A stretch of DNA of 60,463 bases, the filler included, from Sluysia triapertura (taxonomy: Eukaryota): NCBI GenBank assembly GCA_046118255.1. It is 4 parts of 4 records of this genome, joined end to end, with 100 filler letters (N's around TTAATTAATTAA, not from the genome) between each part and the next. Parts side by side here need not be neighbours in the genome. Positions count along the whole stretch, not along the records: positions 30,841 to 49,343 come from JBJNIA010139725.1; 3 more parts are not named here. One strand, given 5' to 3'. Numbering within the stretch: position 1 is the stretch's first letter; each line of letters begins with the position of its first letter. A program made the translations under genes and the position numbers. The notes below the pieces were generated by a model. The model was not told the origin of the DNA. It was given only the letters and a program-made list of their open reading frames with translations, and ran no database searches. Below are positions 30,841 to 51,849 of this stretch, one piece after another.

Positions 30841-30911
<71 letters not shown>
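30684..30911. repeat. (TA)n and (TAT)n microsatellites flanking a gap
   Basis: Read directly. Confidence 0.95.
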
Positions 30912-30912
<1 letters not shown>

Positions 30913-31704
30913 GAATACATACAAAAATAAGAAATTCCTAGTTTTAACCCACTAATTTTTCATATATCATTTTTGCGATGTTTTATTTAAAATTTTTGTA
31001 AAATATTATTTATGTAAACCTTGCATTACTTATTCAAAAAGGTAGAACAATTCAAGATTAGTTTTTCAATTTCCTAGAAGAAATCGTACATTCTTGAACT
31101 AAATTTCAATAATTCTTAATAATATTTAACTTGTATCAGTGTTAAACTTCAAGTTTACTTCTTAGTTAATATTTATTTAAATTAATATTCTTACATTTCT
31201 TTATTTATTTAATACTATATTGTGTTTGAAAAATACGATTAAATTAATCTTTGCTAAATTATAAAAATATATTATTTGCTTAATTTTCTTTATTAAAATC
31301 ACGTTGAAATCAAAATAAATAACTTTATACTGTTTTATGATTTATAATGTTTACTTTAATACTTAATCTTACACTGCAAATTTAATTAATATCTTTTTTA
31401 CATTTTAAATTAAATTATTTTAAAAAAAACTAATCTTATTATTTTTTAAAAAATAATTAAAGCGTTTTTTCATAGTAAATATATTTGAAAAGTTAATAAA
31501 ATTACTTATTTAAATAATGTAAAATAATACAATAAAGAATTAATACAAAAATTATGACGAAAAATGATTATATTGGATTTACTTAACAATTTTATTGCCA
31601 ACATTAATCTAAAACTACGGAAAAATTTAATTTTGTATAAAATAAACCCAAACATATCACATTTTTATTTTTGCGTGCTGTTTAATGTTTTTTCGTTTTC
31701 TTTT

Positions 31705-31926
31705 TCATTGAAATCTTTTCCGTAACTCTTGCCTTAATCGCATATACGCCGAATCCAAATCGTCCAAAGAACGTTCATTGTCCAGTTTTTTAAATCGTAA
31801 ATCATTACCCAAAAATTCGTGATCAAATGCCGATCGTTTACGTTTACCATCTGGCATTGATTGACATATTGTTGCCATGGTTATTAAAAAAATTACAAAT
31901 GCGACAAATTTCAAATGTGCCTTCAT
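31705..31926 (-). CDS. Neuropeptide / peptide-hormone precursor (73 aa)
   Basis: Classical signal peptide MKAHLKFVAFVIFLITMATICQS, then MPD-G-KRKR (amidation plus convertase site) and further KK, R and RKR sites. No stops, GC above the flanks, single coding exon. Confidence 0.8.
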   Translation of the reverse strand: MKAHLKFVAFVIFLITMATICQSMPDGKRKRSAFDHEFLGNDLRFKKLDNERSLDDLDSAYMRLRQELRKRFQ

Positions 31927-33206
31927 TAATAATAATAAAATTTATTTATCAAAATAAAGTTATGATTTTTTTAGCTAGAAAGTCTTTAATATAGATGCAA
32001 TATGCTTTGCTAATATCAAATTTTATTGGCTGGAAATTTTTGAAGCATTTCTCATTCATTAATTATCTAAACAACACCACACCGAAATACATTTGATATA
32101 TAAATAATTTCTTGCATGCATTTTCTTTAAAACTATTGTTATTATTTTTTTATTTAAATTTAATGTTTTAGTTTAATATTTGTTACACATATTCATCATA
32201 AACTTGTATATATTAAATTGTTATCCTAGTATATTATTTAAAACACCTTGATAGTTTTTTATTGCAATTTCGTACTTTTTTTTCTTAAGCGATAAACACA
32301 TTTTCAAATTTTCTATTTGATGTTATTATTCAATAATACAAGTTTTTCTTCGTTATATAATCACATGCTCAAAAATAAATTAATTAATATGTTTCAACAA
32401 CTTCTATTATGAATGCTTTAAATATTCAATACAAAAAAAATAAAAATTTATAAATGAAATATATTATTGTAGAAAATAATAAATTCAAAAAAACATATTA
32501 TTGTTTAACAAGTGTTTTCTCATTTTTAGAAACATTGTCACACCCAACTGAGCATGACGTTAATATCCGTTATCAGTCGTCTTCAATAATTTCCTTTTAA
32601 ACAGATGGCGTTGTTCTTTAGGTATTTCAACTATAAATTCACGGCAGTGTGTTATTATTTATACAAAACATGGAGCAATCTTTTGGTCTTAATGTTTTTT
32701 TAGTTTTTAGAGTAACTAATATTTTTTGAAATAAACTCAAACGGTAAAAGATATACAAAATCGTAAAATACTTAGCTGTTCAATGTTATATTTGCAATTT
32801 ATGTAATTTGTAATTTTTATCAGGTTAAACTTCTGTAAATGTCGTATTTAATCATTTTTTACTAGAGAAAGCAAAAAGAGAAGGCGGTTACCTTCATGCT
32901 TCATTGCAAACAATACGTAATGATGATGTATCAGAAAATGATTCATAGATTTATATTCCTAGTAATGAAGGTGAAAATATCAGTTTTGAACATCAATCTT
33001 TAATGAAAATAAATTCGATTATGAATAGGTTTATTAAGAAGTTGAGTTTCAATAATGAATGTAATTCCCCCCTAATTGAAATATAATTAGCTATGTTTAT
33101 TGATGATTCATTTATCTTCAAGATAAAATCTATCATATTTTAAATTGATTTAACAACAGAATTTTAGAATTATTTTGTAGAATTATTGTAGAAAGAATTA
33201 TGTATA

Positions 33207-33392
33207 ATGATAAATAAATTGGTTACGGATAATGTGCCTTGTCATGCCGCAATGAATGACATAAAAGAAAATGAATTAATTGGCCATCCATTGCCAAGAT
33301 TCAGATCATATAGCCCAATGTTTAATGCTATCAAACATTCTTGGTCAGGTTTAAAAGCGGACATTAAAAGAGATTTAGCCATTCGAATATAA
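33207..33392 (+). mobile_element. IS630/Tc1 (DD34E) transposase fragment
   Basis: VTDNVPCH...YSPMFNAIKHSWSGLK corresponds to DNAxxH...YSPxxNPIExxWxxLK. There are 34 residues between D and the E position, which is K here. Confidence 0.85.
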
Positions 33393-34379
33393 CAATTTAA
33401 GCCGGTGAACTCAATTGGAGTATTTTTAATGAGATTAGAAACCATTATAATTGAAAATATAAATATATTTCAAGTACAAAGATTCATACCTGATGGATTC
33501 ATATAATAGATGTTAGATTTTAAATAATAATTTTTTGTTCTTTATTTATTATACTGGGTTTTAATCTATTTCTGTACTATATATTTAATAAAAATAACAG
33601 CAATTTTATATTTAATATTTGGTGTTTATTTTCTAATTCGAATTATTTATTAGAAAACTGAAATTGTTACATGCCAATTTGAAGTTGTAAAAGTACAGTT
33701 TATAATTTTGCGATAGGTATAATGTTTAAATAAAAACAAATGTCAGAATGATAAAACATTAAAAGTTTTATAAATTCTAAATAAAGCTAAAAATGTACCT
33801 ACAAAAATATTAATCATCAGGATTTGTCGTATATTAAAATTTAATTATAGAGGGAAAATAATTTATAGAACGGACTTGAAGAATTTATTAGTTGCAGTAT
33901 AATGTGAGTGAAAAATATCATGTAAAAAATAGAGATCTATACAGTCAAGGATTCTAGAATCTGCAAATGTTTAATTAAATTTGCTGATGATATTTAACAT
34001 TAATCTTAAAGTAATAATTATCGAAGTTTCTGAACTGACCATGGATTGGTGAATACGGATTATTTAATTTAGTAAGTACTATAACTAAAATAAATTTAAT
34101 TCTATTAAATTTATTTAATTAAAAATCTTATTAATTAAGTTTTGTTCTGTTTTTCTCTACCAAACAAACCGTAGTGTGACAGACGTTTGATTTATTTTTA
34201 TGAATATAAATTTTTTCTTTTATTGATTAATTTTATTGTTATTATGAATAATCGATAACATATTGAGATTGTGTTAATTTAATAGTTGATAATTTTGAAT
34301 AAAGACGCAACACAACAAATGTTGATACCCGTATTAAACAAAATAAAATATTAAGATAGTGGTTCACTAACCATAATAA

Positions 34380-35110
34380 TAGTAATATTGCTTATAAGGC
34401 TCTATCAATTGCTAAAGATAAATCCTCAATCACAGTGTTTATCACAAAAGTGTCGAAGTGAAGTTTTATTCTCTTTTCTTTTTGTATTCTGTCAAGATGA
34501 TTTTTTGTTCTAATTTAAATGAAAATGCAATCGATTATATAGTTGAGTAATTGGTAAAGAGATTAAAAATTGAAAAATTGGAATAATTACTTCATATAAT
34601 TATCCATTCTTTGGAGTATGTCATAAGCCGACCAATTTCAATAATTAAACTTCGACAATAATTTGCGTCTGCTCCCAATTTATTGTCTCCCTCACTTATC
34701 CAAAAATAACGTTTACTATTCAAATAATACATTAAGTTAAAACAAACATAAAATTAATTAAATTCAAATTTCCTTTATATTAAAAGTTTTTTATACAACC
34801 GTATGTTAAAGGCCATCTCAATAAGATGTTTAAGTTGGTGTCCTTTTGAGCATCAATTTAATATATACTTTAATTATACTCAGACATTACATATATAAAT
34901 TTAACTTGAAATTATAAAAATTAATTAAAATAACTACCTTTTCGTTATCTGTGTCAACGTGTTTCCTAAAATCTCAATACTACTTTAATTATACTTTAAT
35001 TCGTATGTTATTTTTTATATACAGATATTTTTCATAAATTATTGGAACACACAATTTTTAATTAAATTAATTAATAAATGTACTTTTATATTTTCAAGAG
35101 TAAAACCTTA
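34380..35110 (+). repeat. Unclassified interspersed repeat family B, copy 3
   Basis: Motifs at 34941-34961 and 35060-35087 match the other copies. Confidence 0.65.
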
Positions 35111-38099
35111 ATGTTTGCCTTTTCGCTTCCTTCTTTCTAATTTAAACATTTTACAAATACATCCCACTAACATGCATAGCTCATCATGATATTTTACTTT
35201 ATTCTTATAATCAAATTACCTCATTTGTATTTTCCAGATATTTTATTTATAAAATTCCTAAACAATAGTTCGTATATTTCAGTATCCAAGGGAATTATCA
35301 TACAACTTTGATAAAACTCGATAATCGATCCGAGTTGAAATCAATCGTCTTCAAAGTTAATTTACATAATAAAATATCGTGTAATAATTTATTCCATAAA
35401 CTATACACTATGTGCTTGATGAAAAGATACACAAGAAACTAACAATGGAACTCTATAATTGGTACATTTTGATATTATAAATTACATTCTAATTTTTAAA
35501 ATTAATCCATCAAAAGTAGTTCATTTGATGGACTTAATAAATCACATGGAATCCCTTTATTATACATTATTATCCATTTGTTCACTTAACTTGAAATAGA
35601 TCTAATGTCTTTATACATTAATTTGTCACTGTGATCTTCGCGGTATCGACGAGGCCTGGGATTGATTAAATTAAAACTATTAAAACCGTACTTCCATTTC
35701 TTCAACCAGATACAAGTAGAACTAATTTCAATTTTAATGATTTTATAATTTAGAAACAAGCTAATTAATTGATAAAGTGTTTGTGGTACTAATACAACTA
35801 CTAAATCAAAGTTTAAAGTTAAATATATGTAGTAAAAATAAGAAATTACCTGAAATATGGTGCCAATAAATTTACTTATACAGCTATTGAAATGTACTTT
35901 AACATCCTTTACATTTTAAATACATTTCTATTTTCAGAAACATTAAAAAAAGTTTTTTTTACAATAATCTTTTTCAATTATGAAAGGCATGATGAAATAA
36001 TTGTTGATTTATAAATAATTGTTTCATGTTAGATATTTTTTCTACTTATTGTTTCCAAACATCACTATAATTATCATTAAATTATAATTATAATGTTTTT
36101 TCATTAATATTGTTTTGGTACATTGTATGTATTAACACAGAAAAACGAATAAAATTAACAATACTTTTACTGAACAAAGAATTAACTTGTCAACATATGA
36201 TTGGTCATTTAAAAAATCAGGTTGGTATTTATCTCGAACAAACTGGTTTGAAATTAAAAATGTATAAACAAATGCATCTTTCTATCTTTAAATTTATTAT
36301 TTGAATTTTATAAAGAAAACCAACTAAACATTTTCAAAGTATTTTGAGCATTCAATGAGGGTAAATTTGCAACTAAAGCAACCAATGTCTTGCATGTATA
36401 AAAATGTCAGTTGGAATATGTCAGTTCGACATATTAAAGAAAAATGATTTGTTATAATATTTTATATTTACATTTATATTCAAATCTAATAAGACTGTAA
36501 AATTGTAACAAAATTTAATAAACCTTTAAACACTAATTATTAATGGTAAATTAATATAATATACTTCATCTAATTAATAAATACACACAATATCTTAAGG
36601 TATTAAATGGATTAAAAGTGCTAATTAAAAAATTATGCAAATTACCATAAGTAAAAACAAATTGTTCAATGATAACTCACAAAATATTCCATATTAAATA
36701 ATATGTTTAATAATTATAAAAATTCATTCAACTTTATTACTTTCTGTTTCGTTTCATAATTTTCAATTTCAGTAAGTCATATAGGTTATTTAAAAATTTC
36801 ATGTAATACAAGATTATAAGTTATCGAGATAGAATAAAATAATAGATGTAATGAAAATATTCAGTTTAATGTTGGAAAATGAAAATATGAATATTTCTTT
36901 AAATATTTGAGTTTTATTGTTTCAATGCCTTTAAATTAGCTTTTTCCTATTTATATACCTGTTTATTTAATAATTGTTCGTTACACTGGGTTTTTATGTG
37001 AAAGATAATTTTATCCTAATAAAATCTAGGTTGCAATGACGAGTTCGCCTGTAGTAAAAGACTTATGGGTATTTTCCTATAGGATTTTAATTAGCTTTCT
37101 TAAATAATCAAATAATGTTAATCCTTGTATTCATTATTCTTATAAATAACTCAACTAAAATAATATGTAAACGTTTATTAAAGTAAAATAAAATAAGCAT
37201 GCAAAATGAGTTTAAAAATAAATATTAAATATTTACTTGCATGTATAGTTTAAATAGGATTTTAACGTATCAGATTAATTTAAATAAAAATTATACATAT
37301 TTTAAGCTCGCTGTAAAACATTTAATATATTTGTCTGCAATGAAATTAAATTGTATCTGATTTTATATTGAATTGCAATGGATTTTGATATATTATAAAT
37401 GATACACCTGTACATTCGAGTATAATGAAGGTAAAAAAATTGGAATCTTTTAATAAAAATAATATTTTAAATTGTTAATTTAAAGGTGTTTTGCTGAAAA
37501 AAATGATATTGTCATTACATGCTTTAATTTATTTAACTTATTATTATTTTTTTATATGTTTATTATTATTATATTTATTATTATTACTATTATTATTAAT
37601 ATTATATTTATTATTATTATATTTATATTTATTATTATTATTATTTTGTCTTAGCTAGCAATTACTACTTTTTTACTCTTTTATTCTATGTTACTCGTTG
37701 CTCTATTTGCCTTCATATGTTTCATTTCGGTTTACTCTACTTCTATTTGACACCTCTCCTACAGCTTTTCTTAATTCGTTGTACAAGACCACTATTAAAA
37801 ATGCAAAATATATTATGAGAAACAATTTGGGAAATCATAGATATTGTAAATATTATTTATGAACAATTATGTTATATGGTGTTGAAATAACAATTTTATT
37901 TTATTAAATATTATGCATATTATAATTGTAAGTATTTGTAAAAAAATAATAATAATTAAATAAATCTGAATCGTTAACTTAGAAAACGTTAATTATAAAA
38001 TTTATAATTACAAAATATCTATTTTAATTGATAATTCAATGTTTATATTTTTCGAAAACTAATAATGAGATTTTTAATTCAATTAAAAACGATTCTGGT

Positions 38100-38820
38100 T
38101 TGATATAAAATAAACAAAAAGAAAAGTGCACAAAAACGGCATCTTCACGTTTATGTGACTACCAGAGTTAAGAGAAACTAAAAGAAATTAATTGGAAGAA
38201 AAAACGTTAATTTATTCTTTGGAAAAATTATTTGTGGAATCTTTCATCATCGCAAATTCGATTAAAGCTTTGTCACAAGTGGTGCTTATCGAAAGGGTCG
38301 TCGTCGTGGTGTTTAACGAAATAGTATTCTCAAAGGGATATTGATTGTAAATCCTGCTGCAGAATTTGTATACTCATTAATCTAAGTAAGCTAATTTTTA
38401 TAAGAAGCACTGATAAACTCTGCATTAAAAGCATTACTTAAAATCTACTAAATCTACACCCAAGAATTAATCCTGGGTCAAACTCAGGACTAAAATTTTT
38501 AAATTGGATATTTATTTATTGTATTTATTATTTAATATTTCGATTTTATTTGTGTTAAACACTTTTATAAAACTTTGTTCACTAATATTATTTGAGGTTC
38601 CGATTTGTATTTGTTCAGTAATAGAATTTTGTCTCATAAAGTATTTTGTTTTCTAGAAAGGGATAAAGTATTGTTTGTAGTAAATAATAGAATTTTGTCG
38701 AATAAAGTATTTTGTTTTCTAATAGTAAGCGAACTAAAATTAGTTAATAAAATCAAGTAAAGGTATTTTTCGAAAGTCGAATCAAATTATTTAAGAAGCT
38801 CAAATAAAGTATTAAAGCAT
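38100..38820 (+). mobile_element. Probable LTR end, PBS-like TGG (near 38280) and repetitive 5' UTR
   Basis: TATAAAA, CCAGAGTTA (shared with 23454), ...TCACAAG-TGGTGCTTATCGAAAGGG, then a ~66-bp tandem duplication (TAATAGAATTTTGTC..ATAAAGTATTTTGTTTTCTA at about 38619 and 38685). Confidence 0.35.
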
Positions 38821-39599
38821 TTTTGAATCATATAAGTAGCCAAAAAAGTTAGATCACATAATTAGAGAAGAGACAACTTATTGACCTGTAAATTCATTAA
38901 ACTTTATAAAATCCTGTGGACTCGTCCGTATACGATAAATCGTGTTATACATGTGGACCCATCTTAAATTTCTTTTTATAATTGTTCAAAGCTAAGGAAA
39001 GCGAACAATATTGAATCACCCAAAATTTTTGAAGAAAATGCTGTAGTTGAAATTATTCAACAACCTGCAAGCACAGTGAATAAGGGAAATTGTCATAATT
39101 ATTTTCAAAGGTCGAAATGCAAGAAGATCGCAGAAGAGAAATCGTCAAGGGGTGCAGCTGAAACATTTATATAAACAGCGTAATCTGTTTACGAGTTAAA
39201 TGAAATCTCCTTCAAACCCTTTTCTCAAAAATAATTAAGGATTTTTTAATATAATGTTTAATAATAGTGCACATAAAACCACCATATAAAATCACGATTT
39301 ATTATATTTATATGCTTTTTAGTCTGTTTCTTTCGTGTTTTTATGTCCATGCCAAAGCAGAAACCTTCGACGAAATCAAACACTTTTACAATGGAATAGA
39401 TTGATTTTGCATGGAGAACTTCAGCCCTTATTTCTTTCCTAATTCTTCAATTATGCATAATTTTCTGAATAGCGAACTCGATATTATCTGGCTTATGGTA
39501 ACTACCTGTTTCTGTACCCTCTTTGTCCAGTTCTAGAGAAGTCCATTTATTCGTCAATTTCATAGTTTTCTTCGTGAATAATAGAAAATCTTACTCGTA

Positions 39600-40010
39600 A
39601 TTTTGTCATCTAAAGTACATTAGTACTGTTTCCTTTTTTGCTTGCACTATGTGCAAAAGGTAATCAAAACCCTGAGTATCAGAAACATAAAACTTTACTT
39701 AACGATGAGATAAAACTTCTCTTTCTAGTCTTTCGATATGCGGTGGATTTTTGTGCCAATATAAGTTCCATTCTGAAGTTAAGATCAAAACAGCCTGGAC
39801 GAAAATTGCTTGTCTGATGCAGCGGACATTGACGATGTTCATCAATATTGGCTCAGATGTTTTCATGAACGATGTCTAATTTGAATTTGTTATCGAAATT
39901 CTGCTCTTTCCATTTGGTTGGTTAAGATACATCATAAATATACTTTTTCATCCAGCTTGTCAGACCTCTTTGCCAAGATTGGACAGACGTCCAAGTTTCT
40001 AAACCATTTC
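39600..40010 (-). mobile_element. Possible retrotransposon integrase relic
   Basis: ENI*ANIDEHRQCPLHQ resembles the second half of the HHCC finger (DIxxxxxxCxxCQ). GC is elevated and there are many stops. Confidence 0.3.
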
Positions 40011-40148
40011 NNNNNNNNNNNNNNNNNNNNNNNNNNNNNNNNNNNNNNNNNNNNNNNNNNNNNNNNNNNNNNNNNNNNNNNNNNNNNNNNNNNNNNNNNN
40101 NNNNNNNNNNNNNNNNNNNNNNNNNNNNNNNNNNNNNNNNNNNNNNNN
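40011..40148. other. Assembly gap
   Basis: Run of N. Confidence 0.99.
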
Positions 40149-40559
40149 TGGGTTACGAATACAAAAAGTTAAGAGATAGAAATTGATATATGTTAGTGTA
40201 ATTTATCAGCACTAGAAAATATATCGGCCAATAAACACTTTAAAATGCACAATTATATTGCCTTTGCAGATTTAATTGGTTTATTAAAATAAAAAAATAT
40301 AATAATAATAATTGATTTAAACAATTTATAACAATTCCAAATCGAAACTCCACTTCAACCATGTTATGCCTCAAACTCAAGAATAAAACCATCCACAATC
40401 ACCATAGGAATTTCACATCCACCAGTAGGGATTACTAAACATCGCGGTGGTAAATCCGGTACCAAAAGCATTTTGGCACAAAGAAACGCAAAAATTAGTA
40501 TGGAAAGGTCGAGAATGCACATTTATCAACTTCATTCACGAATTTGTAAGGCACGTTAC

Positions 40560-40740
40560 TAATGTCACCAAAAGATGTAAGATTTTCTAAATTGGATATA
40601 TTGATATTTGCTCTAATTTATATTGCTTTTCGAAAAGCGTTTAACTGAAGATGCAACCTGGTTACCATGTACTCCCTCCTTGGTCACATTACGGTTGTCA
40701 TTCTGGAGTATGCAACAGTCATTTTAATTCGGTTTGTCTT
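40560..40740 (+). mobile_element. CR1/L2-like LINE reverse transcriptase relic
   Basis: FALIYIAFRKAFN (IYLDFxKAFD motif) at about 40607-40645 and TMYSLLGHITVVILEYATVI (LYxSLVRxxLEYAxxI motif), joined by an internal deletion. Confidence 0.65.
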
Positions 40741-43579
40741 TTTAAATAGTGAGAATATAAAATATAATTTCGATAGTGCAACAGATTATTTTGCTTTAGG
40801 AAAAACTTATTACCATATATGTTACCATATATCGTGTTAATTAAAACATTATGTAACTGTGACTGTGTTCTAAAGAAAATAATACTGAAGAAAATTAAAA
40901 AGTAATATTATGAAAATGTGGTAAATGGAAGAAGATGATAAAGAGAAGTTTAAAAATCGAATTTCAGCAGAATATAATGAAGAAAACGAATAACTCGTTT
41001 TAAAATTTTTGATTCATTATTTTAAAACGAAGCTAAAGTATTAGTTGCAACATTTATGAATGTTTCCGACATATTACTAAATACGGTTTGAATTATATTT
41101 TCGGCCTGATGTTTGTAGCTGAGGTCATTGTTTAATTTGTCGTTACCAATACCAAAAGATCATTTGGTATAATATATGGTTATTCTGGACCAGGAGATAT
41201 AGTTGACTGTAAAAGTTTGTTGATCATTTACCAACTTTGAAAAGAAATCCAATAATTGGTATACAATGAATTTTAATATAACACTATTACAAATTATATA
41301 ATTGTTGAGAAACCTTTTATGCGGTTGCAGAAGCATTTAAATAGTCTTTAAGAACAGGTTATAAAATGTCTGATCGAATATATTAAAAATAAGTAATATT
41401 AATATAATAAATTATTTCTTTCAGAATTTTAAAGAATTATTAATGATATGAATAATGTAATTTTTATATTTATGTATGTACGCAATATTTATATGTAAAA
41501 TAATACATTTGGTTGTAATATTATTTGAAATGTCTAAAATTAATTACTATAATTATTAGTTTTATTGTAAATACTAATTTTATTGTATTATTAGTTTTAT
41601 AGTTTTATTAATATCATATGAAAAAGTAAATATTAAAAATTTTTAGATTTTAAAAGTTAAAGTTCAAAATTATTAGTTTTTTTAAAACGCATAAGATTAA
41701 ATAATCATAAAAAATTAGTTATGCGTAGGAGATACTATAAAAGGTATTAATTTGATAAGTAAATGCACAAGTTAAAAATATTTTAAATCTAAAAGTTTGA
41801 ATATTTCACAAGTTATTAAATCGAATTTTTAATCTTCGACATCTATTCAACAGTTTAGAAATCATTTCTAAAATTATTCAGTTTAATAATTTTCATTTTT
41901 TGTTAGTATCGTTAGTTTATTAGCAGTCTTAAAGGCTAACAAAATTTAACGCAAAATCTATAATATATATAATTAATAATTATTAATTACATAACTTTTA
42001 ATTTAGTTATTTTAAATTACTTTTAAATAAAATGATCTTTCGATTATTCATCTAGAAATAATCGCGATAAAATTCTAATTGTAAATTTATATTTTCATCT
42101 ACAATATATCCTAAAAAGTTTATTATTTAATTTATTCTCAATATATTTTTGTAATGCATTTTATTATTATTATTATTTTTTAAAGTAAATCAAAAGTAAA
42201 TTTCTCTTTAAATTCCATAGTTATAATTTTGCAAAAAATCTACGAATTACTTTAAAACGGTAATATTAAATATTAAACTTATTCTAATCTCACTATAAAA
42301 CGGAATACTAATTACCGATTTGTTTTAAAAGTTTAAAAGCACTATACATTCTAAGAAACTTTCACCATCATATCGCCTTACTTTACTTTGAAAATTTAAC
42401 ATCTAGTAAGTACACATTACTGTTCTAAGAAAAAATATACGGAGTAGCTGTAACACGTAAGCCTAGGATCGTAGGTGAACTCACACGAATTATTTTAATG
42501 TCGAAATATTTCATAAACAATTATACAATAAATTATTTAACTTTTAAAATTTATTGAATTTTGAAATATTTTTTGTTTAATTTTAAATTTAAATATAATA
42601 TTTGATTTGGCTGTAGTTTTTTAATTCCTAACATAGGGTAAAATAAAATGAGCAGGGTTCGGTTACAGTAAACGTCTTAAGCGTTCTTGTAACTATAATT
42701 AAGTAAAATTTAATTCAATGAAATCATTTGTTTTCTCTTATCGTAAAATAGAGGGTCCTAATTTTAACTCATCGATCAATCTGGTTTAGATTTCTGAATA
42801 ATTATTTACTTCAAAATTCTCTGAAATTATAACCATTATGTGATTTATAAACTATTCTTTTACGAAATTTAAATTAAAATAATAACAATCGAGTGAAATG
42901 AATATTGCGTCTTTGAATTAACCGATTACAATAAGTCAGTAATAGCTTAATTTATGTAAACGGAATCCAAATATTTTGAATACCTATCAAAATAAATTTG
43001 AGAAATCATATAAAATTCACAACATTTCTTACATATACAGAACATTAAATAAATTACTTGACTCATTCATAAAACAAACCTATTCGTTGTACATAATTAT
43101 CATGAACTATAATTATTATAAATTCAATCATACTAAAATTTATAATAATTATTATCATTATTGTTATATAAAATGATTATCATATAATAACATCACGATA
43201 TCATCAACATCATCATTTTAAAATATAACAATTATATCATTAGTATCTCTCTTTCTTTTTACATGTGTGTGATTCTACGTTAGATTCTACATTCCTCAGA
43301 GCCATTATGAAGCCATAAATCAAATATATGTTATAAAAAATTAACGAAGGAAAAAATCATTTAAGTCTAATGAAAAGTCTCATTCTCAATGTAATGTTCA
43401 ACTCACCCATAAATCTTCAATACATCCAACCACAAATCTTTCATACACAGTACAACGTTACCACATCTTTCACACAGGCCAATACTTAAAATATAATACA
43501 CCTTAAACAAATTATCTACTTTAAAGGCATCATATTAATATGCTTATCTAAAATATAACGTAATACATCTAAATTACAG

Positions 43580-44547
43580 TAATTTATCGAATAACGATAC
43601 TTCAATCCGCTGATATCGCTCTACCCAACTACACCAACATTGTGTCAATTTTACATTCTCCTTTTTATTATTTGAAGATAAATAAAGATATTTCGAATTT
43701 TTGTAAAAACAATTCACTTGTAGCTTTTTTTTCAAGTCTATTCATGATTGTGGCTATACAAGGTTTGCAAGCTTCACAAGGCGTACGTTATAATATATTC
43801 GTGGTTAGCAGCAGTGAGCATCAAATAAAGTGGAAATAAATAATTTACGCAAATATATCATCGATTTGGATCTTCTGCTTCAAATGAATCATTGTATATC
43901 AATAATTTGTTTGGTTTATGGATTGTTGTCAACGCCCAGGACAATCTACGATATCAGCAAGTACATTGTTTATCGTTCTTCAGTTGGACTGAGCTCATTA
44001 ACCAGTAGCAGTAAAAATAAACTAAATATTGAAAAGGGATTTTCCACCAATGGTATTTCTAACAATCCCGAAATTTCATCAAATTATCGTTAAATAATTC
44101 AACCAGATTATATCAAGACACGATGTTTCGTGAAACGTTATTACAAAATCTTGAATTCATCATTCAATATCTTTATTATCTTTTTTTTATATTAAAATTC
44201 TTACTCTTCTAAAACACGTTAATAAAGCACGAAAATTGGTAGTGTCACTGATGCCTTGTAAATCAAAATCATCGGTTGTTATACTACCATCATCGTGTCG
44301 TAATGTTACTGATCCAACAAGAACAAGTACAACAACATATAATTCCAGTAATATCCAGACGCATTTAAATATAACTCAAGTTAGACTAAATATGGCTACC
44401 GCTGTTCAACTTGATGTAGAACAAGCTCATAGTGATTCTAAACGAGAATCACTTACTCTAACATTTAAATCTCGTTCAGCTAGTTGCAATAATGATAAAA
44501 ATCAATCTACAAATCAGTCAATATTAAGATGCTCGTATAATATGTAA
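43580..44547 (+). pseudogene. Decayed class A peptide-type GPCR (TM5/6/7 and C-tail)
   Basis: ISIICLVYGLLSTPRTIYDI is TM6-like with the Pro kink. In the same frame after the TAA at 44091 comes KILNSSFNIFII (TM7 NSSxNxxIY type). A frameshifted RKLVVSLMPCK plus Ser/Thr-rich tail follows (helix 8 and palmitoyl-Cys). Upstream are hydrophobic NSLVAFFSSLFMIVAI and several N-glycosylation sequons. Confidence 0.55.
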
Positions 44548-45529
44548 TTAGTATTATTATTACTATTAATATTAGAAAGAATTATTTATTTACAAAAATA
44601 AGTAGTCTAAAATTGGAAAAAAAATTGAAACAATATTATAGATAGTAAATCACTATTTATTATAAGTTATATGATTTCGATTACTATTAATGAATTCATT
44701 TGGGTGTTACAAACTTATGTGAGTCAAGTAAAGCTGTCAGACCTCACTATATGAACTTTTACTTCGAGATAATGTATGACACCAACTTCATCACAATTTG
44801 AAAAAGAATAGAAGAATTATGAAAAAGTTATTTACCGTCATTTTGCATTACAGTTTTGTTAATGCAGATACAAAAATAATAATTTAATTCAAATGTATAT
44901 ATAACAATTTATACGAATGTCATAAAGTTATGAATATGAAATACTTGGTCATTAATTCAAGCATTGGTCATTAATCAGAAACGTTTATACATTTAATTAC
45001 GATGTAATTTGTGTTGTAATTGTCTGCATAATTAATTGAATCGAAATTTGATATTTTATCGTCGTCCGTCATTTGTCTTTATTTTTAGAATAACATTTTC
45101 TAAATTGTTTTAAATTGTAAATTATTCTCAACTGAATAAATATTAAATTAATTGTTTTAATTGGGATATTTACATGTTTAATTGTTAATTAATAAAATTA
45201 AAATGCAATACAAAAACGTGGACTTGAATGTGTAGAGTCGGAGTTTATGTAACTCTAAAAATACGATATGTACAAAGAACAAAAGCATCGACCACAACAA
45301 TAAAGAAAGTAATAAAAGTACTGAACAATTCCGTTAAAAAATAGTCTGAAATAATGAGTGTAATATCGAAAATACAATTTCATTGTTTCACTGAATTATT
45401 TCAACAATGCTGAAGAATACTTTGGAGTTTCCAGAAACATTTGTAATATTCTAACATTCTTGAACCTTTGAGAACATTTGAAGTCCTATTGTTGAGGTGC
45501 ACAGACCTACCAGTGGCATTTAGAATTAT

Positions 45530-45625
45530 AATAGTACGATTGACTATAATAAAATGCAATTGTTAGCGTAGTGGTCAGAGTTATGAGGTGAGAGATCCCG
45601 GTCAGTCCATTTATTGAAGTCATGT
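45530..45625 (+). repeat. Degenerate second copy of the tRNA-like repeat
   Basis: TAGTACGATTGACTATAATAAAATGCAATTGTTAG..AGTGGT..GATCCCGGTCAGTCCATTTATTGAAGTC matches 2155-2277, including both flanks, with an internal deletion. Confidence 0.7.
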
Positions 45626-46239
45626 ATTTCGTTAAGTCATTTGTGATTGTGAGGTTGTGCTTTTAGTAATAATGATAATGTAATAATAATAACAATCTAT
45701 TAGTAATTAGTTTATTATCAAAAAAGGCGTTTTAATTCAAATACCTGCAAGGCAATAAATTCATTGAAAATGATGCGATTACTCGCACCATGTATATTTT
45801 ATGAAACAGTCCCAGATATAATATTTTATAAAGTGTTTTTGGAAGTAACTGGAAATAATTTTTGAAGGAAATAATTCGATTAAACATTCGTTGACACTGT
45901 CGTTTCATCGACTTACGTCAGTCGATTAGTTAAGTGAAGATAAAAATTTTTACTTAAAACTTTATTCAATATTCTGATAATAATTTAATACACTACTGCG
46001 AATTAACTACTTATTTAATATTTAATTTTATTTTCTCTTTGATGATGATTCAAATGAAAAAGGGTTATTTATTTCTGTACTTTATGCATCGTGTGAGTAC
46101 GCGTTGGGTTTGGTTTTTATATACATTTTAATATAAAAATAAAATGTATCATTGAGGAATCAAGATAAAACATTACGATGAATTGTGATAAAATATTTTA
46201 AATCAAAACGAATGAAAAATACGAAGAAAGAACCCTTTT

Positions 46240-47040
46240 ATAAGGTTTTACTTGTTAAAATATTAAAGTATATTTGTTAATTACTTTAACTAAAAATTGT
46301 TTAATTTGATAACTTAGTAAAAAAATGTTTGCTCATGGTAAAATAATAATATTAGAGTTAGTGTTTAATGTTGGATTTTATTAGTGTTCTTACGAAGGAC
46401 GTCAACGCAGATAAAGTAAAAATGAGTTATTTTATACAATTTATATATTCTCTGATGTTTAAGTATAATTAAAGTATATATTAAATTGATGCTCATAAAG
46501 GTAGCAAGTAAAATTTGTTGCGACTTACGGTTGACGCACGACATATTACATAAAATATTTCTACGAAAAGAAATTTAGTATTTGGTTATTTTTATCTTTA
46601 TTTTAAGTTGATAAATTTTGCTAACAACAGAATATTAATGTAATAACTATGTTAAATTTTAATTTAATTATGTTGTAAAGATAAGGGGATTGTTTATCAC
46701 AAATCCTATTATCTTGGGATAATTGAGGAGGAAATAAAATTAGAAATTACTTTTGAAATTTAATTATTAAAATTAGTCTGGATATGATTGACTAAAAAGA
46801 ATGAATGGTTTGATAAGTAATTATTTCCATTTTCCAATTTTTAATATCCTAAGCAATTACCAAACTGCTACATGAACAAGTAGATTTTTGCCGTAAAATA
46901 AAAATAAGATAGCTGATAACTTGGTATGCAAAACTTTATCGCCATTAATAACGCTGCTTTAACGCATTTATGATAAATCCAGCAATTGATTAAACTTTAG
47001 AAACAATAGTTTTATTGTTAAGGTTAGTCACTTAAGTTAT
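46240..47040 (-). repeat. Unclassified interspersed repeat family B, copy 4 (inverted)
   Basis: GACGTCAACGCAGATAAAGTAAA at 46398 is the reverse complement of the family motif. Confidence 0.65.
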
Positions 47041-47715
47041 TCTTATTTTATTAGTTTTAATCTTGTTGTGTCACCTCTGGATTTTATAGATTTAGTACAT
47101 AAGATAGTGATTTATAATTGATAGTGATTTATAATTGATGAATTTATCTATTGAAAGTACAACGTATTTCTGAAAACAATAAGAACAATAATTAAAATAA
47201 TAAAGACGAAATCATTTTAAAATGTCTAGAGCCTTAATTTTAGAAATGTGTACCAAAATACACTTAGAACTGAATTAGGATTGAAATATAAACATGCACA
47301 AAATTATAATTCATTAAATTATAGACAGACTAGATTGTATCTTCGAATTCATTTTATGAAAAATTCTGATTTATTCAGATTAATACCTTTCACAATCACT
47401 TTATTCAAAAGGAGCCTTTTTAAACGGTACAATAAAATCAACTTAAAATCATTTGTTATTTCTTTGAAAAAGCCTTTTTTGGGGTATATATGTGAAAACC
47501 CCTTTAAATTTGCTGTTGAAAAAGTACGTATGTTCTTTAAGAATATGGCCTTACGATTCTTATTTAAGAAAATGTTGAAGATATAGACTGAGGACGTAAA
47601 CATGAACTTAATATGAAATATGATTTTACAATTATAATTGGTGAAGAGAGGAATGTCGACAGAGTTAAGTTCACTAGCATATAACTCGAGTCGAATTATT
47701 TTGTATTGTAGTACA

Positions 47716-49076
47716 TTATATTTTACTAGAGTTTCTAACTCTAGTGTATATCTTAACTTCTCTAATGTTTATTTTATTCATTGAGTTATTCTTTATAATT
47801 TCTGAATATGAAAAATATCTATGATGACCATAAACAACGTGTCTTATCAATTTTAGATTATCAAGCTTATCTAGTAATGACTGATTGTTTACATTATGAC
47901 AGTTTTTAATGATATATTTCTTAGTTAATTTTAAAGACTTTGAGTACACAGAATAAAGACAACACATACGAATATATATTTTAGCTATGATTAACATTAT
48001 TGTATTTTTTAGACTTTCATATACATATTCTCCTTGTTCCACTTTACAGGTATTTGGAATTTCTAAAAAGTTAAAATTATAATAAATGTTAAATTTATAA
48101 CTAACAAAAACTAGTACGTTAAAATCAAATATACTATGACTGATTGCAAAGTCGAATATGCTCATTTCGGTTGAATTATACATATTGGCTAAAAAGTAAA
48201 CAAGCAACTTCATTCCTTTAATATTCCATCTCTTGTGAATAATTTTCTTGATGACTAATATTGCATCTTCATTTTGGGTCTTTTTCTTTAAATAATTACA
48301 TCTACAATTATTAGGAAGGTGTACTAATTGATATAGCACTTTACGTATTTCCTTTTCTTTGTTCATCTTACCAAAGCTAAATGACTTTAAAATATCATGA
48401 TCATCACGAAAACTAAAAATAAGACATTATAGTTGAATTCATACAATATATAAAACGGTCTTTGATTAGAAATAATTGTCATCATATCATAGTTTACAGA
48501 AAGATAGAATATGTTGGAGCCTTTGATAATGTTAACTAAATAGTGTACACTATCGTTGTTATTCAATATCGACAAGAAGGACCTACAGATTGATCTTTTT
48601 GCATATATACCAACGTGATAATGTCGTTGAAAATATATTTTATCAATTGAATTAACATCCGTGTTTCCTGGTTTTATTCTTGGTAATGAATACTTTAATT
48701 TCAATTCATAGGAATTACAAATACTAAATTTAGAAAATTTGATGATTAAAATTACGTTATCAAATAAGACTACAGGATTAACAACATTTATATTCTGATA
48801 ATTATCCTTTAGTATTGTCGAGACATTTAAATCTTTAACTAAATTTGAATGTTGATATTTTAATAGATTTATCACCACTAGAACCATATCAGACACATCA
48901 AAAACTGATCCAGTTTTACACTTTAGATATTGAGTTTTTGTACAATCTTTACTTACATTGACCGTTTGTTGATGATTGAAATACTTCGAAACGAATATAT
49001 TGTCGTTACTTGTTTTCATAAACATTATGAATGATAATTTATTAAGTTTATTCTGTCTGGAATCTAAATTTGTCAT
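47716..49076 (-). CDS. Uncharacterised protein, ~442 aa, at least two exons
   Basis: The 229-aa and 216-aa ORFs join in frame when a 32-nt GTATGA...TTTTTAG intron (48413-48444) is removed (632+697 nt). ORFs this long are very unlikely by chance at this AT content. No family recognised. The 3' end may extend further. Confidence 0.65.
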
Positions 49077-49160
49077 TGTCTAGACATAAAATTTCGGTTG
49101 TACCAATTTTTATTTTTAATTGTGCTTGAGTATTATGGCTGCCAAAATTTTTATTTCGCT

Positions 49161-49227
49161 TCACCCAATCAGATGAAAATAATTAGTTAATTTTGTATTT
49201 ATGATGTGAAGTAATCTGATTGGGTGA
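49161..49227. promoter_or_regulatory. Inverted pair of 14-bp CCAAT-containing motifs upstream of the orphan gene
   Basis: TCACCCAATCAGAT at 49161-49174 and its exact reverse complement at 49214-49227. Confidence 0.4.
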
Positions 49228-49269
49228 TATGAAGTAAGTTATGTGACGAAGATTAAAAACTGCCAGCTA

Positions 49270-49331
49270 ACCATCATCAAGGCTGACAGCTCAATGTTAA
49301 CGCTAAATGGGCTGTCAGCATTGGTGGTGGT
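49270..49331 (+). other. 62-nt GC-rich hairpin (pre-miRNA-like or transposon palindrome)
   Basis: ACCATCATCAA-G-GCTGACAGCTCA / TGGGCTGTCAGC-A-TTGGTGGTGGT: 23 pairs including 3 G:U, one mismatch, 14-nt loop. Confidence 0.55.
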
Positions 49332-51849
49332 AGTAACCAGTGTNNNNNNNNNNNNNNNNNNNNNNNNNNNNNNNNNNNNNNNNNNNNTTAATTAATTAAN
49401 NNNNNNNNNNNNNNNNNNNNNNNNNNNNNNNNNNNNNNNNNNNCATACTCTAACATTTTTGAAACCCTTTGAAAATAGAGGGGCCAACAACAATATTTCC
49501 AATTCTATAATCGCCCTCACCACAAAAATAAATTTAATTGCATTCACTACTTAATTTATTTTAGTAATAGAAAATAACAATTTAATTAATTACAATCAAA
49601 ATTTAATATTATTGTAATTAAATTTAGTAATGATACAGATTTAAATTAAAATATAAATTTTAATTAGACACTGTATAAGGAATTGCACAAAGAGAAATAA
49701 ATTGTTGCGACGAGATATTATTGTCCGAGAAGTTTTTGACATATCGATCAAAATATTGCTTATATATTGTTGAAGGACCGAAGCTGTTAATACTGAAAAC
49801 TGCAGTTATTAAAGACTTAACAAGACGCTGCTGCATCATTATATTTATAAGCTATATTGAACATAATATAATTTTAATTAATATAGTTTAGAGTAAGTTA
49901 ATATCTGAATAAAATTTCTTTTCTTTAATTAAATAATTCTTTACAACACATTACGAGAAAATTAAGTTTAATATCTTATTTAATTATAAATTCTAATATT
50001 TTACATAATATTATAGCGTTTACATTTTAGTTAATAAACTTTGATGTATTTAGTCTTTTATTTTTAATAAAGATGGAGAAAGTTTGAATTTTAATTAAAT
50101 AAAAAATTGCACTTCCATCTCGAATACCGGAGACGGGTAAAGACTCTAAACCTTCAGCATAAGTATTTAATTAAATTAATTAATTAAAATTAAGTAAATA
50201 ATAAAATAAAAGTAATTCTGCTTAACAGAATTGATAAGGAACAGATACTAACTCAAATAGAAACAATAAATCATAAATAAGAGTTAAATTTTTTAATCTA
50301 ACAACAATAATATTATTTCTACTACGTAAACATTATGTAATTGCGTAAGGTTGCAAAAATAGCATTTAACCTGTGATAAAAAGTAAAAAATTCTTGTGAA
50401 ATGCAGTTAAATGTTAACGAGATTCTATATTCCAAAAACATGAAGTGATTTTAAATCATACAAAGAATATTTTCATGTGTATAAGATGGTAATAAAATAC
50501 ACTAAAAAACTTAGATTTCTTCCAGAAGTTTTATGTTAAACGCCTAAGTTGCATTTAATTCAACTCACTCGACATTATTTCATTTCATTCTTAAAATATA
50601 CAAAAACCTCCAAACTCGTTAATTATAAATGTGATTTCACGAAATAGTTACAATAATTCATTAAAATTATTGTAGTTTTTATTACGTAAGTAATACAATA
50701 TTTTAATTTCGATACCAGAAAATTTAATCTCAGTTTTCATAATTTAAAATAGCATATAAAATAATATGAATAAATGGAAAATTTATCATGTTTTAAGTTG
50801 ATCTATTTTTGATAAAGTAATAAAATAAAAAATGTGACAAATTATCAATTAAAAATTTTATCACAATTCATTCATTCTAATAAATTATTTTTTATTTTTA
50901 AAATAATTTTGAAACAAATAAAATGTTATATATTAAGATCAAACTTATATGAAATAGTTTTAAAAATATATTAGCGACTCGTTAATAGCTTAACTGAGAC
51001 ATGATTTATACGCAGATATAAATATTCAATAATGCGATATTAATTTCACAATTATGATTTCTACGCACACTGTAATTACAAATAGATTGAAAGCATAATT
51101 ACGTTTGTAGTAAGCATAATTACTTAACAAAGTAAGTTATGAAATTATTTTTCAATTAAATCTATTTTATTTACTTACATAAGGCAGCGTTTTTATATCA
51201 CCTTCATTTACGTTAATGAAACAATATATAACTGAAATATTGTAAATATGGCCTTCTATCCAAATCTGTTTGAAAGGTAGTATTGGGTACTTGAATAAAT
51301 TTTCATTATTTAAAATATAAGAAAAAAAATTTATCAAAATTTTAACTACTTTTTTAAAGTTTCTTAAAATATTTAGCTTTAACTTTTGCTCGAATGTCGT
51401 AGAAAATTTAACAGTAAAATTAGAATGTCAAGTTACATTCTAACTAAATAGCACTTTTATTGTGACCGAAAGTAACTGGTTGCAAGAGTTGAAAGAAACT
51501 ATCTGTATTGAAGCTGAGGTGAGAAAGTTATTTTTAGCAACTGCAGAGAACTTTTAAAATATTATATTTATGAAATAAAATTTTGCCAAAAATATGCGTT
51601 ACTCTATGGATTATTTTATATGGTAAATACTCAATAAAATACTTTAACAGTTGTTATTTTAGCATGAAATTTTGTTTGTTGAGAGTAAAGCCATTTATCT
51701 AAAACATTTACAACATTCAAGAGCATATAAAACAATTTTTATAAATCTCATTAGCTTGGTACGTAAGTTCGTTAATCAATTTTTATATCTTGAAAAACAG
51801 TATTAAATGTTCAAAATTAAGACTAAAACAATTAACGATGAGTTTTAAA

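Follow-up and report, generated by a model that had tools for sequence, protein, structure and literature searches.

A minus-strand open reading frame (ORF) at positions 31705-31926 of the window (the 60,463-nucleotide stretch of Sluysia triapertura DNA, filler included) raises two questions: whether it encodes a precursor of secreted peptides, and which of the peptides that such a precursor would release is the one for which the gene has been kept. According to the original prediction, the ORF was a novel neuropeptide precursor releasing a very short amidated peptide directly behind the signal peptide. The DNA examined here was the piece 30841-49343 (18.5 kb, from record JBJNIA010139725.1), and 864 bp separate the gene from the edge of this piece.

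Open reading frame and coding character

Translation of the piece yielded an ATG-to-TGA frame of 73 aa, in which all strings quoted in the original prediction were present in the same order, namely the leader MKAHLKFVAFVIFLITMATICQS, QSMPD-G-KRKR, SAFDHEFLGNDLRF-KK, LDNE-R, and SLDDLDSAYMRLRQEL-RKR-FQ. No extra coding exon is needed, because homologues of 73-86 aa align with the protein from Met1 through to the C-terminus. The piece is strongly AT-rich (GC 0.19-0.33 per kb) and contains a single N gap (40011-40148). GC content was 0.347 in the ORF vs. 0.227 upstream and 0.160 downstream of it, and within the ORF it decreased over the three codon positions (0.43 > 0.32 > 0.28). ATG-initiated ORFs of at least 73 aa were observed six times in the 18.5-kb piece, with 0.7 expected from block shuffles; since there are six of them, ORF length is weak evidence by itself. 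The ORF is a coding sequence, beyond chance, and it is homology (see below) that decides this.

A tblastn search of the piece with all five family proteins detected no second copy of the gene. Two hexamers resembling polyadenylation signals follow the stop codon (ATTAAA after 18 nt and AATAAA after 35 nt); they carry little weight, as DNA of ~20% GC abounds in such hexamers. Ahead of the ATG, a TATATT (67 nt) and a CCAAT (103 nt) are consensus matches only, in AT-rich DNA. All features assigned to the gene are listed in Table 1.

Table 1. Features of the peptide gene, in window coordinates
Feature	Position	Strand	Basis
Single-exon complete CDS, 73 codons + TGA	31705..31926 (stop 31705-31707)	-	ORF, composition, homologues
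Predicted signal peptide, residues 1-21, MKAHLKFVAFVIFLITMATIC	31864..31926	-	Hydropathy, (-3,-1) sites, AlphaFold helix, alignment
Spacer QSMPD, Gly as candidate amide donor, KRKR as putative cleavage site	31834..31863	-	Sequence; positional equivalent in Schmidtea amidated
Predicted core peptide SAFDHEFLGNDLRF, 14 residues	31792..31833	-	Conservation in five members; Schmidtea equivalent detected by MS
KK dibasic site adjoining the C-terminal end of the core	31786..31791	-	Equivalent KR, KK or RKR in 5/5 members
C-terminal peptide LDNERSLDDLDSAYMRLRQELRKRFQ, predicted helical, possible RKR site at 31714-31722	31708..31785	-	AlphaFold, alignment A2
Polyadenylation-signal-like ATTAAA (31681-31686) and AATAAA (31664-31669)	31664..31686	-	Hexamer match
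TATA-like TATATT (31988-31993) and CCAAT (32025-32029)	31988..32029	-	Consensus matches

Other features of the piece

None of the ORFs in the piece carried a Pfam domain above threshold, and an Rfam scan of the piece returned no family. Two adjoining long minus-strand ORFs occupy 47716-49079 at ~25% GC, one of 229 aa (48387-49076) and one of 216 aa (47716-48366). Both far exceed the length expected by chance at such composition, and their stop-to-stop frames, which are different, overlap by 37 nt, so that the pair resembles a frameshifted ORF of ~450 aa. Neither had a Pfam domain or was found among called genes on record; the pair may be either an orphan gene or a mobile-element gene in decay. 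On the plus strand, a frame of 66 codons (33192-33389) matched DDE_3 weakly (E 0.0017, 18.7 bits; Pfam cut-off 28.6) and is probably the remnant of a decayed Tc1/mariner-type transposase, situated ~1.3 kb upstream of the peptide gene. A GC-richer island surrounds the N gap (38800-40850; 0.30-0.41 in 200-bp windows vs. ~0.22 elsewhere) and holds several open frames of 50-76 codons on both strands, for which neither Pfam nor Rfam gave a match. Low-complexity sequence was represented by an (ATT)n/(TAA)n microsatellite (30841-30912), which reaches the piece edge and lies 0.8 kb downstream of the gene, and by a long run of I/L-type codons (37479-37655, GC 0.10).

Homologue searches and family membership

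An exhaustive HMMER search with the window protein against 1.84 billion representative proteins returned three matches (P0001-P0003). Two of them were full-length matches, i.e., P0002 (83 aa, E 1.5e-5) and P0003 (73 aa, E 8.3e-5), both encoded on short contigs of ENA sample ERZ27256860. The top-ranking match, P0001 (2024 aa), was dismissed as fortuitous: it contains a repeated FLG(T/Q)D(I/T)RFQKSLI stretch that mimics HEFLGNDLRFKKL six times, and by its sequence the protein appears to consist of insect-odorant-receptor-like units fused in tandem. A profile was built from the window protein, P0002, and P0003, excluding P0004 and P0005, and this profile then recovered both of the excluded proteins, P0004 (86 aa, from Logan run SRR33002330) at E 1.5e-17 and P0005 (86 aa) at E 2.5e-11. 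The latter is named X1.D.A1.2 of Schmidtea mediterranea (V9XMT1) in UniRef and nr. Across the searches of 1.84 and 5.8 billion proteins the family thus has five members of 73-86 aa, and a profile of all five found no members beyond these. No match was obtained by exact look-up of the protein among the gene calls of public contigs, by a word-index search with the window protein alone, or by a Pfam scan of the 73-aa protein, which gave no family even at E 10. Profile search of the PDB sequences returned designed helical bundles only (E 1.6), and scanning JGI metagenome contigs for back-translated FDHEFLG[GN] produced 47 pattern matches and no relative.

The five members have a common layout (alignment A2), consisting of a hydrophobic leader, a variable and mostly acidic spacer, a core flanked by dibasic sites, and a tail with an A-Y/L/L pattern. 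The protein agrees with the prediction of a dibasic-rich precursor of the prohormone type, with a putative signal peptide. The predicted novelty was upheld in part: the protein clearly matches S. mediterranea X1.D.A1.2, whose peptides have been detected, so the window gene is a divergent additional member of an existing family and a claim to a wholly new family fails, but the existing family carries no name and has not been described as one of neuropeptides.

Sample ERZ27256860 carries a long form (83 aa, P0002) as well as a short form (73 aa, P0003), a co-occurrence which suggests that a single animal may carry two paralogues. The window gene, too, encodes a short form, which is not clearly closer to P0003 (32% global identity) than to P0002 (45%). 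The family appears to be restricted to flatworms. Besides the window, the only member from a named organism is that of the triclad planarian S. mediterranea. The window was called flatworm-like on the sole basis of this triclad member and the AT-rich genome.

Peptides of the Schmidtea homologue

Peptides of V9XMT1 were detected by mass spectrometry (MS) by Ong et al. (2016, J Biol Chem 291:8109; PMC4825013), whose supplementary file 2 lists SEQADENQLIDNTGP-amide, TASFDHEFLGGNLR, SFDHEFLGGNLR, and PLQNPSTTDQFWKDFELAYRRLKDHLEKKNA. The X1.D.A1.2 products found in Schmidtea therefore comprise the amidated spacer, the core peptide, and an intact C-terminal 31-mer (PMC4825013), and from the detected peptides it follows that the Schmidtea precursor is cut at G20|S21 and at both dibasic sites flanking the core. 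The spacer is amidated via G-KR, and the 31-mer tail stays intact despite internal RR and KK. According to the main text of the same study, the transcript is enriched in the head or CNS. That study named spp-20 and did not name X1.D.A1.2 as a prohormone, and it was the only paper retrieved by a literature search for “X1.D.A1.2.” The strings FDHEFL, EFLGG, GGNLRF, and NQLIDNTG were absent from the eight supplementary files of Collins et al. 2010 (PMC2953531), including Table S5, and Table S4 contained no matching family; since the motifs are absent from these files, the family lies outside the 51 catalogued planarian prohormone genes. Full-text searches for the core peptide strings, with the catalogues of McVeigh 2009 and Koziol 2016 outside their scope, found no paper.

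Conserved core and proposed processing

The strongest conservation falls on the core. Residues F34-G40, R44, and F45 are identical in all five members (alignment A2), and the core follows the pattern FDHEFLG-x-x-(L/F)-R-F, with dibasic sites on both sides in each case. The upstream site is KR, KKR, or KRKR and lies 1-3 residues ahead of the core, while the downstream site (KR, KK, or RKR) immediately follows RF. The window holds the most divergent copy of the family, its core reading GND where the others have GGN, and its post-core KK is less favourable to convertases than the KR or RKR that the other members have there. Compared with the core at locus L001 (a 1717-nt contig of GC 0.37 with an unbroken coding sequence), 10 of 12 residues are common, and at 7 of these 10 the synonymous codons differ, which points to selection on the peptide and not on the DNA.

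As judged from the alignment, the family-conserved product in the window would be SAFDHEFLGNDLRF, a 14-mer with a calculated [M+H]+ of 1667.78, predicted to be non-amidated because no Gly stands before the KK. The exact C-terminus of the mature core is uncertain, since the Schmidtea core peptide was seen extended to ...GGNLR with the last Phe absent (PMC4825013); the window peptide lacking this Phe would have a calculated [M+H]+ of 1520.71.

In our view the gene is probably intact and free of introns, and its product would be a small secreted prohormone belonging to the X1.D.A1.2 family. The leader (residues 1-21) would direct entry into the secretory pathway and would then be removed, probably at C21|Q22. 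A prohormone convertase would cut at KRKR (residues 28-31) and at KK (residues 46-47), and a carboxypeptidase would trim the basic residues. Three products would result: a short spacer peptide amidated at the expense of its C-terminal Gly (pGlu-SMPD-NH2 or MPD-NH2), the family-defining non-amidated 14-mer, and a helical peptide of 21-26 residues from the C-terminal end (calculated [M+H]+ 2552.24 or 3267.67). Of these, the invariant 14-mer is the best candidate for the signalling molecule, and it may act in the nervous system via a putative receptor. Only for Schmidtea does the literature document cleavage at the corresponding sites, an amidated spacer, and expression enriched in the head or CNS; for the window species, processing, expression, and activity are inferred.

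The gene thereby represents a divergent addition to a very small family of secreted precursors, one member of which is processed in the planarian head. Comparison of the members marks a peptide of 13-15 residues (FDHEFLG..RF) as the product under selection, which gives planarian neurobiology a specific peptide candidate and no new category of signalling molecule.

Predicted leader, and spacer and tail as possible alternative sources of the active product

Residues 5-20 of the window protein are strongly hydrophobic (9-residue Kyte-Doolittle means reach 3.5), and AlphaFold, run with the family alignment, predicted a leader helix over residues 3-23. Positions compatible with the (-3,-1) rule occur after residues 16, 18, 21, 22, and 23. 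Gln22 would be the likeliest new N-terminus, because C21 shares an alignment column (A2) with Schmidtea G20, which precedes the MS-detected N-terminal peptide, and because T-I-C|Q at C21|Q22 fits the (-3,-1) rule. The candidate spacer products have calculated [M+H]+ values of 559.22 (pGlu-SMPD-NH2) and 361.15 (MPD-NH2, from a cut after S23).

It is unlikely that this very short amidated peptide, located right behind the signal, is the active product and the remainder of the precursor an associated peptide. G-KRKR is a canonical signal for amidation and cleavage, a Schmidtea-aligned cut would leave an N-terminal Gln and so permit pGlu, and amidation at the window G-KRKR is plausible because the positional equivalent, the Schmidtea post-signal peptide, was detected in amidated form (PMC4825013). 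The spacer itself, however, is unconserved across the five members in sequence and in length (3-5 residues in the window protein vs. ~6-16 in the others), and a Gly ahead of the first dibasic site occurs in two of them only (window and Schmidtea), being missing in P0002, P0003, and P0004. Selection is seen on the core and the tail and not on the spacer, and acidic spacers beside signal peptides are commonly by-products of processing. MPD-amide or pGlu-SMPD-amide as the defining product thus gives way to the invariant FDHEFLG..RF core; the spacer peptide is best read from the alignment as a variable by-product rather than the reason for conservation of the gene, and among the three products it probably matters least.

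The tail presents a second alternative, in which the C-terminal helical peptide would be the active hormone, or a sorting or chaperoning domain, and the core would be kept for processing or binding. The model agrees with the predicted helical tail, placing a helix at residues 53-72 behind a low-confidence disordered coil (24-52), with block-mean pLDDT values of 71, 89, and 74 across residues 51-73 and a mean of 69.6 for the whole protein; outside the signal-peptide helix, the tail is the most confidently predicted part (pLDDT up to 89). This predicted succession of helix, coil, and helix matches the shape expected of a prohormone. In the tail, A60, Y61, L64, and L68 are identical in all five members, and the Schmidtea 31-mer was found intact in tissue extracts despite its RR and KK. 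The invariant positions nevertheless amount to 4 of ~26 in the tail vs. 9 of 12 in the core, and tail length differs by 5-8 residues among members; an active tail, like an active spacer, is unlikely. A further splitting of the tail, at the single R and at RKR, had been predicted; the corresponding strings are present, but the window tail may stay whole, as the 31-mer does in Schmidtea.

That the ORF arose by chance or is a decayed pseudogene in AT-rich DNA, giving no product, could draw on the six ATG-ORFs of at least 73 aa in the piece, on the most divergent core of the family (GND for GGN, KK for KR), and on the absence of the protein from the called genes on public contigs, but it is very improbable given a frame unbroken from Met to stop, full-length homologues, retained cleavage sites, a GC rise patterned by codon position, and amino acids conserved across synonymous changes, the chance origin being ruled out by the homology.

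Comparison with known systems

The closest known system is Schmidtea X1.D.A1.2, with which the probable prohormone of the window agrees end to end (leader, spacer, dibasic site, xxxFDHEFLGxxLRF, dibasic site, and A-Y..L...L tail) at ~41% full-length identity and 49% in the best local alignment. The window protein differs in being 13 residues shorter, with a spacer of 3-5 vs. 15 residues, GND vs. GGN in the core, KK vs. KR behind it, and a shorter tail without the starting Pro. More generally, it resembles the planarian spp/npp prohormones (PMC2953531; spp-20, PMC4825013), which are likewise small, signal-peptide-bearing, lineage-restricted, and cut at dibasic sites; two of these, spp-12 and spp-16, stand under “Miscellaneous non-amidated peptides” in Table S4 of PMC2953531.

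A likeness to GnRH/AKH/corazonin-type genes had been noted, and it extends to the position of a peptide directly behind the signal, the possible pGlu start, the G-KR, and the longer associated peptide. Peptides of that type have 8-11 residues and conserved aromatic positions. The window peptide, unlike these, would comprise 3-5 residues, has no aromatic residue, and is unconserved in its own family, so its sequence does not place it among them.

The family core ends in LRF, as in FMRFamide-like and RFamide peptides. Here, unlike in those, RF is directly followed by KK, KR, or RKR, and because none of the five members has a Gly before the dibasic site, an RFamide cannot form. The spacing D-H-x-F-L...R-F also recalls arthropod myosuppressin (xDVDHVFLRFamide), from which the family core differs by four added residues between FL and RF. 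Pedal peptide/orcokinin-type peptides are non-amidated, occur in multiple copies, and are 13-15 residues long, starting with x(F/L)D and ending in an aromatic residue. A possible resemblance of the core to them lies in its length, in the xFD at its start, and in its non-amidated C-terminus; it is present as one copy per precursor.

The internal EFLG had been noted as recalling EFLGamide/TRH-type peptides while lacking the basic site behind it, and this observation holds for the whole family. The Platynereis TRH-type receptor has FSEFLGamide as its ligand, and F-D-H-E-F-L-G(-G) of the family resembles F-S-E-F-L-G(-G). The difference lies in what follows: the window EFLG continues into NDLRF-KK and that of the homologues into GN(L/F)RF-(KR or RKR), so that all five members extend to RF before the dibasic site and the cleavage/amidation site after EFLG is absent from each. 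By sequence, the combination of an amide-donor Gly and a basic site that marks EFLGamide/TRH-type peptides is thus missing. The precursors are also quite different, with one core copy each in the X1.D.A1.2 family, while the annelid EFLGa peptides are encoded by a second coding region behind the stop codon of the FVa precursor. Descent of the FDHEFLG(G)xLRF peptides from a spiralian EFLGamide/TRH-type peptide, by which the cleavage/amidation site after EFLG-G would have been lost and a C-terminal extension gained, is improbable. If true, it would supply the missing flatworm ligand of a TRH-type receptor; failing this, the family could constitute a flatworm-specific orphan neuropeptide system.
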